A DNA stretch of 64,000 nucleotides from Botryllus schlosseri (Eukaryota), in contig CM119386.1 in NCBI GenBank assembly GCA_051294905.1, forward strand, positions 5,952,001-6,016,000, read 5' to 3'. The position numbers and the translations under genes were made by a program. The notes under the pieces are model-generated. The model was not told the origin of the DNA and did not search any database. It saw nothing but the letters and a program-made list of their open reading frames with translations. Of the stretch, positions 29,601 through 38,600 are shown in pieces (position 1 is the stretch's first letter; each line of letters opens with the position of its first letter).

Positions 29601-32600
29601 TCATAGCTATAGTTAACCAGTATGATGTTACGGTTCTAAAAATTTATTCTTTGCAATGCATTAATGCTATGTATGAAGTCATAATGATTGGAACTCCAAT
29701 ACTCGATGCAACTCGGCTCTTAACAGTAAATTCAGCATTGAATCAGCCAAATATTCGATATTTACCAGCCCTGGCTACAGCCACACTTCGCAATTTAATC
29801 AATTTTCAATCGACTTGTAGTTGAAGCACGCGCCAACAAAGTAATTTCCTGATCAAATGATCGCGTGTGTTTATAGATTCTAAACAGAAACTGGAAATGA
29901 GCTTCTAAAAAGTGCGAGTATCGTCCTCGAGATGTCGCACCAACTAATTAGCATTATTTCTTCAAGCGAAACAAAGCAACTTACTTGTCGGCGAGTTCAA
30001 AGTACAACCGCACGTCGGTATCAACTTCCGGCGCGATCGTCAGAAACATCACGTTCTTTTCGTCTTGCAGAACGATTTCGTGGTAGGACATGTCGTGGAC
30101 GCCAGACGGATCAAACACATGCAGCTCAGGGGGGCTGTATTTTGTTTTCTTTGTCGGTACTTCGATACGGAACGGACTGTGAATACACGGGCAGAGATGA
30201 GCGGATGTAATATCTTCAATGATTCAATTCTCCAGATTCAGATTCAAGTCCAAGAGCTTCTTGGAGGTACAAAACTTCAACAGTTGAATAGCATATATTC
30301 ATGGCTGATACTCGTCAGGGGTAATCGTCAGCAACTAGAAGAGAATTGGTGATACCTTTTTGATGAACAATGTTCTTTCCGATTCCCTACTACTTGCTGA
30401 TGATTGCCCCTGACGAGTGTCAGCCAAAAATATTCGGGTTCATTTCAATATGAATATACTATTCAATCGAAAATTGAAGAGCATTAGAAATTTCACATAA
30501 CGGTAGCTCATGAAAACGCATATCAGCAGTGTGCAATTTTGTTATCATTTGCTTCTTCTACATTAATACTTTGTTTCTACTTTGTAGAGTTACTTTTTTC
30601 ATTTAGTTTGATTGACAGCAGTATATACGACAAATCATATATATATATATGTAAATGTCTGTCCCGATTCCGTTGTGCGCGAAAGCGTAAATAGGTGACT
30701 CTCGAAGCCACGAGCTGTGACGGCAGAGTTAGTCTACGACGCACGTGTTCTCAGAGCCCGCATATGGAGGTCGGCACGCTGGGGCGGCAGACGTAAGATA
30801 GACAATTGGCTCCATTTCGCTTCATTTATTCTTTCTATTTCTTATTGAACCGCAGTATCATTGAACCTGGTAAATCTACAAGTTTCTGACCATTAATTAC
30901 TACTATTTGGCTGTTCTGTGCTAGTAAAGAAAGCTCCTTGGATCTGCGTGTGTGATCAGGATTGCAAGAGTATACTCAGAGCAGTCATTAGTCAGTGACT
31001 AGTGCGTACACCGGGAACTGTAGCTGTAGCGTCGACTCCAATCAAGCACTATACCAGCGTGTCTTGCAACAAGTCGTTGCAGCGACCGCTGCAGTCAGAA
31101 ACTTTACCAGTTACAAAGTTGAAAGTCGGAGAAGTTTGAAGTAATGGAAGCTGCAGCAACGCCAGAGAAAGCTGATGGCTCAGCCGTACAAAGTCAGACT
31201 GTGGCAACGTCAGAGACGGGTGCTGACTGCCCAGCTCCACCAAGTTCGGAAAATGTTGAAGACGTACGTGGAAGTGTCAAGAAAGAAATTGTGGACCAGA
31301 TCCCCGCGAAGAGCAAGTCAGTGGGTTCTGACGATCCAACCAGTAGTGACGGCACTTTCCATGGATTCGATCAGAGATTGGTTGAACTTGAACGTCAGTT
31401 CCATGAAACAAAAGGCGAAGTTGAAAGATATTTGGACGCAACTGAGACTGCCATGGCGCTATGCGCAAATAAAGAGGAAGTGCGTGAAGAAATGAAAAGA
31501 GTTGTTAGCCATCGAAACGAAATGAAGAAAATTACTGAAGAAATTATTTCAAATCACGCGGAAAATACGGAAACGAAAGATTTCACCGACAGTCTGAGGT
31601 TGGTTGAAATAGATTTCAAAAGAATTCGGCAAGCCGTTGCGGACTTCATGATGCTTCCATCCGAAAATGGATCCGTCCGTAGCCGAGCGAGATCTGGGGC
31701 CGGCTCGAGATCGAGTCGACATTCACAAAACAGTCGCACCAGCCTCGCCAGCAACAAAGAGCTACGTCATGCAAGCATAAGGGAAGCAGCCGCTTTGGAA
31801 GTAAAACTGGAATTTTCAGGGCAAGAAGCTGAAGTGAAAAAAAAGTTAGTTGAAGATGAAGCAGAGATGAAAAGACAAGAAGCTGAAATGAAAAAGAAGT
31901 TAGTTGAAGATGAAGCAAAGTTGTCGCAATTGGCTCTGGAGAGTCAACTTGCTGAAAAACGAGCCGTGATCAAGGCTTGTGAGCAAATTGAAAAGGAGGA
32001 AAACCCCTTCGGCCTGGACGAAGAGGCCCAGTGTGTTGGATCTAGCTTCGCAGAAATAAAGAATAGCGTTCCGGTTTTGGATTCGGGAGACAAGGTAAAA
32101 AACTTTGTTTTAAGTGACTCTCATGACCGTCCCAAAGTAACGCCATCTACTGTCAAATTTGTGGAACCTATATCGCCAACCTTAGTCGTTGATAAAGCTC
32201 CTCTGCCAATGAACCATGTCTCGTATGTTGAACCACAAACAACTGAACAAAAACTGTTTGTGCCGAGTCCTAAATCGCCCACCGATCATTCCATGCTTAT
32301 ACCAAGTGAACATCAATACAATGTAAGACCTAGGACGCGAATACCCGATATAAAAGTTTGGGTTTTTGATGGTGATGAAACCAACTATATAGAGTGGGAA
32401 AATTCGTTCAAGGCTTTGGTAGAAGATAGAGTCTGCTGTGTCAATGAGAAGATGAATTTGTTGAAACAGCATCTTGGTCCCAACCCGTTGAAAGTTGTTA
32501 AAAGTCATTTTTTGAATGGTACGGAGGAATCCTACCAAAAAGCAATCGGAGACTTGCGAGACAGGTATGGAAGCCCTGTTGTCATTGGCCAAACCTTCCT

Positions 32601-35600
32601 GAATAGACTGCGTGCTTGGCGCTACATAAAAGAATATGACAAACTTGGTTTGCGCGAATTCTCTGATTTTTTGGAGCAAGTAGTAGTCAACAAGCATTAT
32701 GTATCAGAGTTGGGCATTCTTGATTACTCGTCAAGTCATATGTACATAGTGAAGAAGTTACCTCCGTCACTAGTAGAGAAGTGGCGCGTTAAAGTGTCGC
32801 AATACAAAGTGGAAACGAACGATAAAAATTGCTACCCGCCCTTTGAATATTTCGTGTCATTTGTAAGAGATCAGTCAGAGCTTCAAAACATGCCGGAATT
32901 CAGAATGCTTAATGAAGACCGACATAGCAACGTCACTCATTCCGCTCAAAAGATTTCGCGTGATAAGCCAAGTGTGTCGTTCGGAACTAATGTGAAGCCA
33001 GATGAATTCGATTGCATCTTTTGTAAAAAGAAGGGCCATCATATCCCGGATTGTGTGGATTTCGAAAAGTTGCCCTTCTCTGAGCGAAAATCGTATATTT
33101 ACGACAAATTTTTATGTTATGGGTGTGGAGAAAAGTGTACTAGATCCCACAAGGGGCAAGTCTGTACCAAGCGCGTGGTTTGTAAGAAATGCGGCAAGTT
33201 TCATTTTACTAGCCTCCATTTGAGCTCTGCTCCCAGTGTTTCAAATTGCATTCAAGTCTGTGAGTCGGAAACCATGGAAATCGATAATACCATGCTGGTG
33301 CCGGTCTGGGTTAATCCCAAGTCGGATCCCACGAAGATTACCCTTTGTTACGCCGCACTGGACTCGTTGAGTAACCGTTCTTTTGTTACGGAAGAGATAA
33401 AGAGTGAGCTTCGTCTGAATAGTAAATCCACGCATGTCGAGTTGTCTACAATGAGCGGAAAGGATGCATGGCCTATTGAGAAAGTTTGGAACCTCGAAGT
33501 TACATCCTATGACAAGATGAAAAGTGTCAACGTAGCACAAGCGTATGTCAGAGATGAGATACCCGCGAACAGAACACAGATTCCTAAAGCGTCCGCATGC
33601 AAAGAGTGGGCACACCTCCAGAAGGTAGCAGATGAGTTGCCTCCTTATCTGCCAAATGCAAAAGTCGGCATCTTGCTGGGGAGTGATGTGGTCGCAGCGC
33701 TAATCCCTCGTGAAGTGGTGGCTGGGGGAGATAATGAGCCGTTTGCTATGAAGACCGACTTGGGATGGGGTGTTGTCGGTAAAATCTGTAAAGGTGTTGA
33801 TCCTAACAATGCTATATGTCATAGGATCATAGTGCAAGAAATGAACAATGACGCTAACATTGTATTAGCATCGCGAGCAAAAGAGATAATCAACCCGAAC
33901 GCAGTGAAGAACATGTTTGAATTGGAGTTCGCCGAGCATAAAGGAAAGTTATCGTCGCTCTCCGTAGAAGATCGAAGATTCCTGCAGATAATTTCAGACG
34001 AGATAAAGCAGCGTCCAGACAAGCACTACGAAATGCCTCTCCCGCTTCGAGACGAGACTGTCGATATTCCCAACAACAAATCGTTCGTTTTGAAAAGGAC
34101 TGCCCAACTTGGTAAGCGTTTGGCAAAGCATGATGACTTTCGTAATGACTATGCCACATTTATGAGTGATATTTTGAACATGTATGCCGAGAAAGTCCCT
34201 AATAATGAGCTTGATCTGAATAATGGTAAAGTGAACTACTTGATCCACATGGGTGTGTACCACCCACGTAAGCCAAACCAAATTCGTGTCGTGTTTGATG
34301 GCTCTGCCAAGTATTTAGGCATGAGTTTGAATGATTACCTGCTAACTGGCCCAGATCTGTTGAACAAAATGTTAGGTGTGCTTTGTCGAATGAGAAAGTT
34401 TGATTACGCCATGAGTGCGGATTTGAAAAGTATGTTCTTTCAGTTTTTTGTCAGTCCCAAGCACCGCGATCTGCTGCGCTTCTTTTGGTGGGAAGATGGC
34501 GACGTCGTAAATGGCAAGTTGATAGAGTATCGTCTAAAAGTTCATTTGTTCGGGGCTTGTAGCAGTCCCTCCGTTTGCAACTTTGGCCTGAAACGTGCGG
34601 CAGATGATGGTGAAGTAGAATTTGGCACGCCTGCGGCAGATTTCATCCGTGATAACTTTTATATGGATGATGGCATAATATCCATAGATGATGAATCTGA
34701 GATGATCGCGCTGGCCAAAAGTAGCAGCGCGTTGTGTGAAAATTTTGGCATGAAGCTTTGCAAATTTGTCTCAAATAGTCGTAAAGTGATTGAGAGTATT
34801 GAACCGTCCGATAGAGCTAAGGACATAAAAGAAGTTGATTTGAAAAAGGACGCATTGCCGAATGTAAGAACGCTTGGTATCGTTTGGTGTATTGAAAATG
34901 ATTCGTTGCAGTTTCGCATGCAACTCAAAGATTGTCCGTGTACCAGGCGAGGCATTTTGTCGACAGTGGCTTCAATATATGACCCGTTAGGCCTCGCCGC
35001 TGTTATATTGATTGAGCCCAAAGCCATTTTGCAATCACTGTGTAAAGCTAATGCATCCTGGGACGACCCTGTTCCCCAAGAGTTGTGGATGCGCTGGGAG
35101 AAATGGCGTTCGGATATCCATTCAATTGAGTCGGTCCACATAAGACGTTGTTATAAGCCCCTTGAATTTGGCAAAGTAGAGCACGTTGAGCTGCATCATT
35201 TTTCTGATGCTAGTAATTTCGCATATGGCCAGTGTTCCTATGTGCGTTTGGTAAATGATAAAGGGGATGTGTCCTGTTCCCTTGTGATGGGGAAAGCTCG
35301 TGTAGCCCCATTGAATAAGCAAGTTTCTATTCCTAGGCTGGAATTGAGCGCTGCTGTTGTGTCGTCGCGAATGAGTCGGTTTCTTCGCGACGAGTTGAAG
35401 TATGAGAATGTTGTCGAGTATTTCTGGGTTGATTCCATGGTAGTTTTAGGCTACATCAAAAATGAAGCAAAACGATTTCATGCGTATGTCGCAAATCGAG
35501 TCCAGACAATCCATGACCATACTGATGTGGATTCATGGTACTACGTGCCTTCTGCACAAAACCCGAGTGACGATGCCAGTAGAGGTATCCCTGTGAGTGA

Positions 35601-38600
35601 TTTTAATGCAAAATGTCGTTGGTTGTGTGGCCCTAGTTTCCTGCATGTCGTGGGCCCCTTTGCGGCCCCTGAGTCCACCTTTGAACCGTGTGAGTCAGAA
35701 AAAACAGTAATTGCTAATGAAATGAGAAAAGCAACTGCTTTTGTGAGTAACGTAGTGCAAAATCCAACGCACCCTACGTTCGGGGTTATTGATCCAGACA
35801 GCCTTGGGCATTTCTCGTGTTGGGATAAGTGTAAGAGATCTGTGGCTAAAGCTATGCGTTTTGTTGCTATATTGAAAAAATCGGATCCAGGAGATCTGTC
35901 TGTAAGTTTACTTCAAGATGTTGAATGTCTGCTGGTGCGCTCAGCTCAGCAAGAATGTTTTGCAAAGGAAATTGAGACTTTGCACAGTGGGAAACCACTG
36001 CAGAAAAATAGTGCTTTGTTTCGCTTGAATCCGTTTCTCGATTCTTGTGGTATGCTACGACTCGAAGGTCGCATTGAAAATTCTGATGAGCCCTATAATG
36101 TGAAACACCCAGTCTTGATACCCAAGAAGTCGTGCATCACTGATATGCTGGTGCGTCATTTCCATGAACGTAGTAACCACTCCGGTCGCTACATGACTTT
36201 GAATCTTATCCGTCAACACGGATATTGGTTGATAAATGGATCGTCTCGAGTGACGCATGTAATTGGTTGTTGTGTTACTTGTCGCAAGTTGCGGCGGCCC
36301 CTTGAGAGCCAGAAAATGGCGCCTTTGCCAGTAGATAGGTTTGATACTGAAGCGCCCTTCACCTACGTTGCATGCGATGTCTTTGGTATATACTATGTGA
36401 AAGAGAAGCGATCTACTTTGAAGCGTTATTGTGTTGTGTTTACATGTTTGTCTTCTCGTGCTATCCATTTGGAATCGTTGAATGCTATGACCACTGATTC
36501 CTTCATCAATGCCCTCCGCAGAATGTTGGCCCGTAGAGGTCCTATGACGCAGCTGAGATGTGACTGTGGCACAAATTTTGTCGGCGCTAGTAATGAGTTG
36601 AAAAAAGCTGCTGTGAAATTGAACCAAACTAAGGTGAAAAACTTCTTGTTGAATGAGCATTGCGATTTTATTGAATTCAACTTTGCCGTTCCCCATGCTA
36701 GTCACATGTCGGGAGCAGTCGAAAGACTAATCCGAACCGTGAAGGCTGCTCTTAATCCTTTGTTGCTGAAATTTGGTCATATCTTGTGTGATGAGTCTTA
36801 CCGTACATTTCTTGCCGAAGTTGAGAATATTGTAAATTCAAGACCGTTGTGTGTGCAAAATTTGAATGATCCATCAGCTCCAATCCCATTGTCCCCTCAG
36901 CATATTCTCACATTGAAGTCCAAGGTTTTGTTGCCTCCACCAGGAGTATTTCAAAAATGTGATATATATTTGGTAAAAAGATGGCGCAGGGTCCAGTACC
37001 TTGCCAACGAGTTTTGGAGTAAATGGAAACGTGAGTACTTGAGCTCACTGCAAAATCGAAGTAAATGGAATGATGTCAAACGGGATTTCAAACCCGGCGA
37101 TATTGTTTTAATTTCTGACCCTAATCAGCCCCGGAATTTTTGGAAACTTGGCCGAGTTGAGGTTGTCACGCCAAGTGGTGATGGGCACATTCGGAAAGCA
37201 ACTGTGTTAGTTGCGACAGCGGAGCTTGATGCAAAGGGTAGACGCACTGCTTCTTCCACTTATGTTGACCGCCCCATTCACAAGTTGGTGCTTATGATAT
37301 CAGTCGATTCTTGATTGTCTGTTTTTCGCTGTGTGATATGTGTGAATCGCGTTATTTTTTGTCGTTGTTATTGTTATTTGTTTGGTACATACTTGAGACC
37401 ATTTGGATCTCTCGTACTCTATGTGTTATCAGTGTAGTCCGATTTCCCGAAGTGGAGCCACATTGTTTACACGTTTGCAAAAATAGTTGTAAAGACATTT
37501 TATGTTGCACAAAAATGTCCTTAAAAGGGGGAGTGTAAATGTCTGTCCCGATTCCGTTGTGCGCGAAAGCGTAAATAGGTCACTCTCGAAGCCACGAGCT
37601 GTGACGGCAGAGTTAGTCTACGACGCACGTGTTCTCAGAGCCCGCATATGGAGGTCGGCACGCTGGGGCGGCAGACGTAAGATAGACAATTGGCTCCATT
37701 TCGCTTCATTTATTCTTTCTATTTCTTATTGAACCGCAGTATCATTGAACCTGGTAAATCTACAAGTTTCTGACCATTAATTACTACTATTTGGCTGTTC
37801 TGTGCTAGTAAAGAAAGCTCCTTGGATCTGCGTGTGTGATCAGGATTGCAAGAGTATACTCAGAGCGGTCATTAGTCAGTGACTAGTGCGTACACCGGGA
37901 ACTGTAGCTGTAGCGTCGACTCCAATCAAGCACTATACCAGCGTGTCTTGCAACAAGTCGTTGCAGCGACCGCTACAATATAGTCATATAGGCATATTAC
38001 ATTCACATATGCTATTATAAATATTATTGCATCATACTTTTTACAACATAAATTTATATATATAACACATACAGCTATATAATGACTGTAGCGTGACCAG
38101 CTGAGTTGATGACCTTACTGCTGTATCGCTGATCACAAGTCCAAATCAAAATTCAAAATAACTGTAACTCCATATCCGATAAAAATCCGGCCAAATTTAT
38201 CTAATCTTTTTTTTCTAATCTAAATCCATGCTCAATTTCTCAACCTAGAACACGGCTAATTAGCACACTGTCTCGAAAGGTCTGCAGACGTATACCTGTC
38301 GCGACTTGTGGAGTTGATTTTCCTGTTGTCGGGAAGGTTGAGATTCAAACTCACGACGGCAGAGTTAACGGCGTCGGCCGAGTCATCCCATATGAAAGGA
38401 TTTTTGTCAGCTACGACAAGCTGCGCGATGAAATTACGTCGTAAGTTCGGCATGACGATAAATAAACGACAAGATTAAACCTCGACGTCTATCGTTTCGT
38501 CTTCTCCCAGCCCGTTTAGCAGGTCGCTACCGCACGGTAGACTGAAAGCTTTTTTGTTGCCTCCATCGTCGCAAAGCGTCTTTGCTGTTTTCCGCTCAAC

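Follow-up and report, generated by a model that had tools for sequence, protein, structure and literature searches.

How does a long terminal repeat (LTR) retrotransposon begin minus-strand DNA synthesis when its 5' LTR is not followed by a transfer RNA (tRNA) binding site? The question is raised by a BEL/Pao element of the tunicate Botryllus schlosseri, which lies in a 64,000-nucleotide (64-kb) stretch of contig CM119386.1 (assembly GCA_051294905.1, positions 5,952,001 to 6,016,000, forward strand). This whole stretch is referred to as the window and positions are given within it. The 5' LTR of the element ends with ..GCTGCA (A at 31093) and is not followed by TGG. It is instead abutted by a site whose exact complement is found inside the LTR itself. 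On comparative sequence evidence, the element most likely primes its own minus-strand DNA synthesis in the manner of Tf1, without any host tRNA. The features involved are the following:

31094..31104, + strand: primer-binding site core GTCAGAAACTT, directly abutting the LTR; identical in all 16 family copies retaining the region
31105..31110, + strand: primer-binding site extension TACCAG; from sequence, copies and a shuffle test
30880..30890, + strand: putative core self-primer AAGTTTCTGAC; exact complement of 31094-31104, its 3' end C30890 pairing with G31094, the first post-LTR base
30867..30872, + strand: CTGGTA, putative extension arm of the self-primer; complements 31105-31110 and is invariant in 30 copies
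30873..30879, + strand: 7-nucleotide (nt) bulge between the two primer helices; nowhere else in the arm do the copies vary

A preliminary description of the window, made from the sequence alone, had claimed this site, its complement in the LTR, the extension of 6 base pairs (bp) across the 7-nt bulge and the missing TGG; on sequence reading every coordinate proved exact. As in self-priming elements, the site abutting U5 complements a 5' segment of the element's own RNA, the 3' end of the segment lying opposite the first post-U5 base. Throughout the window the 11-mer is confined to the two LTRs, apart from its reversed occurrence at the primer site, with 0.08 matches expected by chance. The complementarity was assessed by an anchored test, in which a complement of the post-LTR sequence starting at most 4 nt from the LTR end was sought anywhere in the LTR and compared with dinucleotide shuffles. 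A match of 11 nt was reached in 1 of 2000 shuffles. The extension CTGGTA/TACCAG beat 497 of 500 shuffles, and both primer helices are included in the minimum-energy fold of 30854-31143.

The most informative evidence comes from other BEL/Pao families. A Peptidase_A17 search of the B. schlosseri genome returned 150 places, many with open reading frames (ORFs) of about 2000 amino acids. The choice of eight families rested on differences in ORF length and preceded any look at their primer sites, and results for all eight are given here; their LTR pairs and boundaries were set from self-comparison and target duplications. None of the eight has a TGG after the LTR. An exact complement of 10-13 nt in the family's own LTR was found in six, with the site starting 0-4 nt after the LTR and the complement located 103-254 nt before the LTR end. 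The observed lengths were reached by 1, 5, 2, 0, 19 and 2 of 2000 shuffles in these six families, and the control comparison of each site with the LTRs of other families gave 4-9 nt at most. The site sequences are unrelated between families (e.g. GTAGATACAG, GTTTTAAAATA and GTTAAAAATTACG) and the LTRs are unalignable. A compensatory change was also found inside a single family, in which the pairing is GTAGATACAG/CTGTATCTAC in two copies and GTAAATACAG/CTGTATTTAC in a third.

Relatives were also identified in other animals. When the Pol region was used as a protein query, proteins of about 50% identity were obtained from Styela clava, sea urchins, starfish and a sea anemone. Six genomic loci were taken, five of them with LTR pairs. 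The elements left out are one from Acanthaster without an LTR pair in the stretch (L084), a 76%-identical relative on a metagenome scaffold that is cut within the LTR and misses the primer arm (L085), and a Logan contig with a single collapsed LTR whose boundary is not definable (L086). The sites and complements of the five relatives are:

Styela clava: post-LTR site GTAAAATACA, LTR complement TGTATTTTAC
Lytechinus variegatus: post-LTR site ATAGAATACAA, LTR complement TTGTATTCTAT
Patiria miniata: post-LTR site ATAACAATC, LTR complement GATTGTTAT
Strongylocentrotus purpuratus: post-LTR site ATAACAATC, LTR complement GATTGTTAT
Actinostola sp.: post-LTR site ATAAAAAGACA, LTR complement TGTCTTTTTAT

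TGG follows the LTR in none of these five. All five carry a complement of 9-11 nt counted from the first post-LTR base and located 129-217 nt before the LTR end; its length was reached by 10, 7, 80, 31 and 1 of 1000 shuffles. The check that the preliminary description had proposed, covariation between site and LTR in related families, therefore came out in its favor, with a complement of differing sequence in 6/8 families of B. schlosseri and 5/5 elements of other species. Taken together, an own-LTR complement is present in 11 of the 13 families and has been kept by two-sided changes, to which the compensatory change within one family is added. Pairing starts at the first post-LTR base in eight of the 13 and within 2-4 nt of it in three more. 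The base that follows the primer 3' end is C in every family but the one labelled D. Because the compared elements are 33-57% identical to the window element in Pol, the own-LTR complement spans deep BEL/Pao lineages.

The second helix is distributed more narrowly. The bulge-spanning extension beats all but 3 to 11 of 500 shuffles in tunicate families, namely the window element, two other B. schlosseri families and Styela clava. No significant second helix was detected by the same 500-shuffle test in the echinoderm and anemone elements, and in these CA precedes the core, as at a cap site. This distribution would fit a leader lengthened by trans-splicing in tunicates and, outside them, a primer at the extreme 5' end of the RNA.

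Copies of the window family indicate which parts of the arrangement are maintained. At least 40 family LTRs are present in the 495-Mb B. schlosseri genome, at 88-97% identity. Thirty LTR copies were aligned, 16 of which retain the primer site. The primer arm (30867-30890) is invariant across the 30 copies apart from one change in the bulge, and the 17-nt site (31094-31110) is identical in 16/16 copies that retain it; the next four bases vary, and likewise position 30893. Among about 30 LTR copies, the 24-nt arm falls within the top 3% most conserved 24-nt windows of the LTR. The comparison of copies demonstrates constraint on both arm and site and cannot by itself show covariation.

Some of the copies are of interest in their own right. 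Short derivatives of about 3.3 kb (G000:C1:10198944-10202284) keep both LTRs, the 17-nt primer site and about 780 nt that span the leader and the start of gag, and their interior holds about 1.6 kb without match to the window element. A similar spacing was found at C4:2419543/2422450, C156:951/3762 and C10:8307907/8310704. These derivatives are likely non-autonomous riders on the family of the window element. In one LTR copy (G000:C13:1436345-1436799), possibly truncated or recombined, the primer site breaks off after its first nine bases and unrelated sequence takes over.

Self-priming depends on the 5' end of the element RNA, which was located by mapping four public RNA runs of the same organism onto 30560-31260. 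The LTR is transcribed and the RNA includes the whole primer arm. Two features of the LTR are relevant:

30822..30855, + strand: pyrimidine-rich tract plus AG (30854-30855), spliced-leader trans-splice acceptor; from junction reads of the bulk RNA run, with CAG just before 30856
30924..30929, + strand: probable poly(A) signal AGTAAA; RNA 3' end at about 30940-30945 (end of R) as estimated from the depth fall in runs X22 and X23

Of the bulk-run reads, 41 at 30854 and 16 at 30861 extend upstream into letters foreign to the LTR, ...ACATGGGG followed by ATTGGAGTATTTGGTTGTATTA. The string ACATGGGG matches the end of a template-switch oligo, and the reads are presumed to mark cDNA 5' ends. A 19-mer from ATTGGAGTATTTGGTTGTATTA occurs at 554 dispersed genomic places, for example C2:1071635-1071725 and C1:5345647-5345737; in many cases GTAAGCATCG... 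comes next, the arrangement of a spliced-leader gene with its GT donor. The leader joined to the family LTR was found at one genomic place only, with a mismatch that is absent from the reads. Since the leader in the reads is encoded at dispersed places and not upstream of the AG acceptor to which it is joined, we conclude that the element RNA receives the host spliced leader by trans-splicing at 30855/30856. The mature RNA consists of a leader of about 24 nt and then of 30856 onward; the primer arm occupies nt 12-35 of the LTR-derived part and the core starts 25 nt in. The start of transcription predicted beforehand at 30867-30880 was not borne out, since the leader is joined at 30855/30856. 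The RNA 5' end is neither downstream of 30890 nor far upstream, and the primer arm lies near it. At the other end of R, the single-cell runs X22 and X23, taken to be 3'-end libraries, show a drop in sense depth from about 200 to about 8 between 30896 and 30967, which fits a poly(A) site about 15 nt past AGTAAA.

Two other origins of the 5' read ends were considered. A classical promoter start at the Inr-like (initiator-like) motifs near 30854 and 30860 was rejected, since this is where the reads place a splice acceptor. The idea that the extra letters represent an LTR subfamily with a variant U3 was likewise rejected, as the joined form occurs once in the genome and the leader alone 554 times. 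The sole direct fusion of leader and family LTR at the acceptor position (G000:C10:22032406-22032439, minus strand) may have arisen as DNA copied from a trans-spliced RNA of the element. The leader itself (about 24 nt, ending ...GGTTGTATTAAG) is followed by GTAAGCATCG.. in some places; many other occurrences stand at the head of unrelated repeat families, suggesting that these are retro-copied trans-spliced RNAs. In the two B. schlosseri families that lack a strong own-LTR complement (L065/L066/L067/L073 and L077), a strong acceptor-like ..TTTCAG stands just before the last five bases of the putative primer. Inclusion of the 3' end of the spliced leader, checked by eye, adds at most two pairs in one of these families and none in the other. 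Antisense reads of X22 and X23 over 31016-31095, the last 80 nt of the LTR, run on into AACATTATCTTCAC..., which does not belong to the element; they probably come from a solo LTR, or from an LTR end within another transcript, elsewhere in the genome.

The following course of events can be proposed. The RNA would be made from the LTR promoter and would receive its 5' end by the trans-splicing that the reads show at 30855/30856. The 5' leader would then fold back, 30880-30890 and 30867-30872 pairing with 31094-31110, as suggested by the sequence and by the covariation between families. By analogy with the Tf1 scheme, the RNase H of the element would cut after C30890, between 30890 and 30891, and the primer RNA left by the cut would end with ...UUUCUGAC. 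Reverse transcriptase would extend this 3' end through U5 back to 30891, and judging from the depth profile about 50 nt of R (30891 to about 30943) would be left for the transfer to the 3' R. Plus-strand synthesis would copy the primer and so reset the site to its match in the LTR in each cycle, as in the established retroviral and Tf1 scheme; such resetting would explain the exact complementarity observed in every family.

Other explanations have to be weighed against self-priming. It is very unlikely that the real primer is a host tRNA, a tRNA fragment or another small RNA of sequence CTGGTAAAGTTTCTGAC (contiguous and unbulged), the LTR match being secondary. The idea has some appeal: the site is a contiguous 17-mer, the LTR match is broken by the 7-nt bulge, and internal tRNA fragments are generally known to prime copia and Ty5. 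Half-tRNA sites have also been noted (PMC6317226). Yet the contiguous complement of the 17-mer, counted where it is not followed by T as at the family's own sites, was found at 0 places in the 495-Mb genome. A search for the 11-mer before or after a T-loop motif gave 1 and 2 matches, against 14 and 2 in the reversed-pattern control, and none was tRNA-like. The window holds no tRNA genes. Direct comparison with tRNAs is a weak test, as 63 genes were scored by the Rfam search and the 30 loci taken represent four tRNA types; the best match was 4-6 nt. Whether judged from the missing TGG, from the genome-wide patterns or from these four types, no tRNA-complementary site was detected beside the 5' LTR. 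Above all, the site of each family differs and matches the family's own LTR, which no shared host RNA can explain.

That the own-LTR match arose by chance is hardly credible. A single 11-mer in a 444-nt LTR and a modest fold z-score might be taken in that sense, but the match was reached in only 1 of 2000 shuffles and, anchored in the same way, recurs in 10 further independent families, so that coincidence is effectively refuted. A third explanation takes the complementarity as real and gives it another role: it would form a long-range RNA structure of the 5' leader, serving packaging, dimerization or translation control, while reverse transcription is primed by something unrecognized. The helix is indeed present in the fold of the leader, retroviral primer sites are generally known to have regulatory pairings around them, and two families lack a strong complement. 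A structural role would however not account for the position of the pairing, which lies at the first post-LTR base in eight of 13 families and within 2-4 nt in three more, as set by the start of the minus strand. Nor was any other primer site, TGG or tRNA complement, found near the LTR end in any family. We consider this explanation unlikely. The preliminary description had named three grounds for giving up Tf1-like self-priming: an RNA 5' end downstream of 30890 or far upstream, a host tRNA or tRNA fragment matching the site equally well, and related elements devoid of such complementarity. None was observed (for host tRNAs and fragments, by the genome-wide patterns), and its proposal is supported, with cleavage and priming as predicted steps.

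Several points nevertheless weigh against self-priming. Two of the eight B. schlosseri families are weak, with 9 bp including a G:U pair in one and 6 bp in the other. The whole-leader fold of 30854-31143 is not significantly stable (z = -1.76). In Tf1 the primer consists of the very first bases of the transcript, which is not the case here, and the window element would prime with a fragment of about 59 nt, host leader included. The RNA that is replicated may also differ from the trans-spliced mRNA represented by the reads. Lastly, the direct tRNA comparison covers four types, the rest being covered by genome-wide patterns in an assembly that may lack the mitochondrial genome.

The element in which this arrangement was found is complete. 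Repeat search and alignment delimit two LTRs of 444 nt each (30650-31093 and 37534-37977) that differ by three mismatches, begin with TG and finish with CA. Its parts are:

30645..30649, + strand: 5' copy of the target-site duplication ATATA; the same 5 bases stand at 37978-37982, on the other flank of the element
30650..31093, + strand: 5' LTR, 444 nt, TG..CA; direct repeat with 37534-37977
31144..37314, + strand: single intact gag-pol ORF of 2056 amino acids with DUF1759 gag, reverse transcriptase, Peptidase_A17, integrase and DUF5641; from ORF and domain search
37523..37533, + strand: polypurine tract AAAAGGGGGAG, adjoining the 3' LTR; from sequence reading
37534..37977, + strand: 3' LTR, which holds a second copy of the primer arm at 37751-37774; from repeat alignment

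The BEL/Pao marker, the Pao-type aspartic peptidase, is present in Pol (Peptidase_A17, PF05380, E 1.8e-46, residues 1267-1431). The domain search also placed the gag domain DUF1759 at residues 408-548 and the C-terminal DUF5641 at 1945-2050. Reverse transcriptase (RVT_1, 1074-1205) precedes integrase (Integrase_H2C2 and rve, 1667-1815), the RVT_1 and integrase matches being below the curated cut-off. Peptidase_A17, the order of gag, reverse transcriptase, integrase and DUF5641, and the LTR pair with its target-site duplication and polypurine tract place the element in BEL/Pao (Belpaoviridae). The assignment made beforehand was thus confirmed by Peptidase_A17, DUF1759 and DUF5641 within the 2056-residue ORF. 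A Ty3/gypsy-type Pol with chromodomain integrase was not found by the domain search, which returned BEL/Pao domains only, and the element is therefore not a member of the Tf1/sushi clade. It is a young, intact BEL/Pao LTR retrotransposon. At the three positions where its LTRs differ (30697, 30983 and 31091), the 3' LTR has the family-common base. The 5' LTR base is found in no read or other copy at 30697 and 31091, and is shared with a minority of bulk RNA reads at 30983.

Self-priming has been described for Tf1, Tf2 and Tj1 and for the Tf1/sushi group of Ty3/gypsy elements, and predicted for the Tcn1 chromoviruses and the TAR lineage of copia (PMC6317226). In the Tf1 scheme, the post-LTR sequence complements a 5' segment of about 11 nt of the element's own RNA, which can be extended into U5 (PMC4600332). 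Tf1 is the one case in which self-priming has been demonstrated; for the Ty3/gypsy relatives of Tf1 and a single copia lineage of plants it has been inferred. Authors who address the matter in BEL/Pao treat these elements as tRNA-primed. Primer sites are unmentioned in two BEL/Pao surveys and one general review of LTR retroelements (PMC3118150, PMC554778, PMC2774666). No description of self-priming in BEL/Pao was found in the literature searched, which did not extend to the first Tf1 publications or to the work of Frame et al. 2001 (BEL-like elements), so that an older description is possible.

A broader reading, for and against which we see the scales evenly balanced, is that self-priming is the usual, and possibly ancestral, start of reverse transcription in a large BEL/Pao clade of cnidarians, echinoderms and tunicates. 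The tunicate version would be adapted to the trans-spliced 5' end provided by the host, with a longer, leader-bearing primer and a two-helix clamp. If this is true, self-priming would, together with the Tf1-type and copia cases, occur in all three superfamilies of LTR retrotransposons. An own-LTR primer conserved in three animal phyla would explain why primer sites are missing from the tRNA-based annotation of many BEL/Pao elements. It would also extend to a third superfamily the question, raised in PMC3601003, of whether tRNA priming came later than hairpin or self-priming. A simple prediction follows, namely a primer 3' end of A-C or A-U and then C. The connection to host trans-splicing shows that a primer can be formed by bases other than the first of the transcript.

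How the window element compares with known systems can be stated as follows. Within its own superfamily, it shares gene order and LTR/polypurine tract layout with Achilles, a BEL/Pao element of the olive fruit fly. Achilles carries a tRNA-Tyr site (PMC4580426), whereas the window element and its 12 compared relatives have neither TGG nor a tRNA match. As in the plant Ty1/copia TAR lineage (Houba, Osr-1) and in Tcn1, self-priming is proposed from complementarity alone (PMC6317226), the superfamilies and hosts being different. The closest parallel is with Tf1, Tf2 and Tj1, which likewise have no tRNA site and carry an exact complement of about 11 nt of their own 5' RNA segment abutting the 5' LTR. 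Unlike the Tf1 group, the window element belongs to BEL/Pao and has no chromodomain integrase. Its putative primer and those of its tunicate relatives are not the first 11 nt of the RNA, and a second helix of 4-7 bp is formed across a bulge. In the window element, the core lies 25 nt into the LTR-derived leader, behind the trans-spliced leader of the host. In the echinoderm and anemone relatives, the CA that precedes the core would fit a Tf1-like start at the very 5' end of the RNA.

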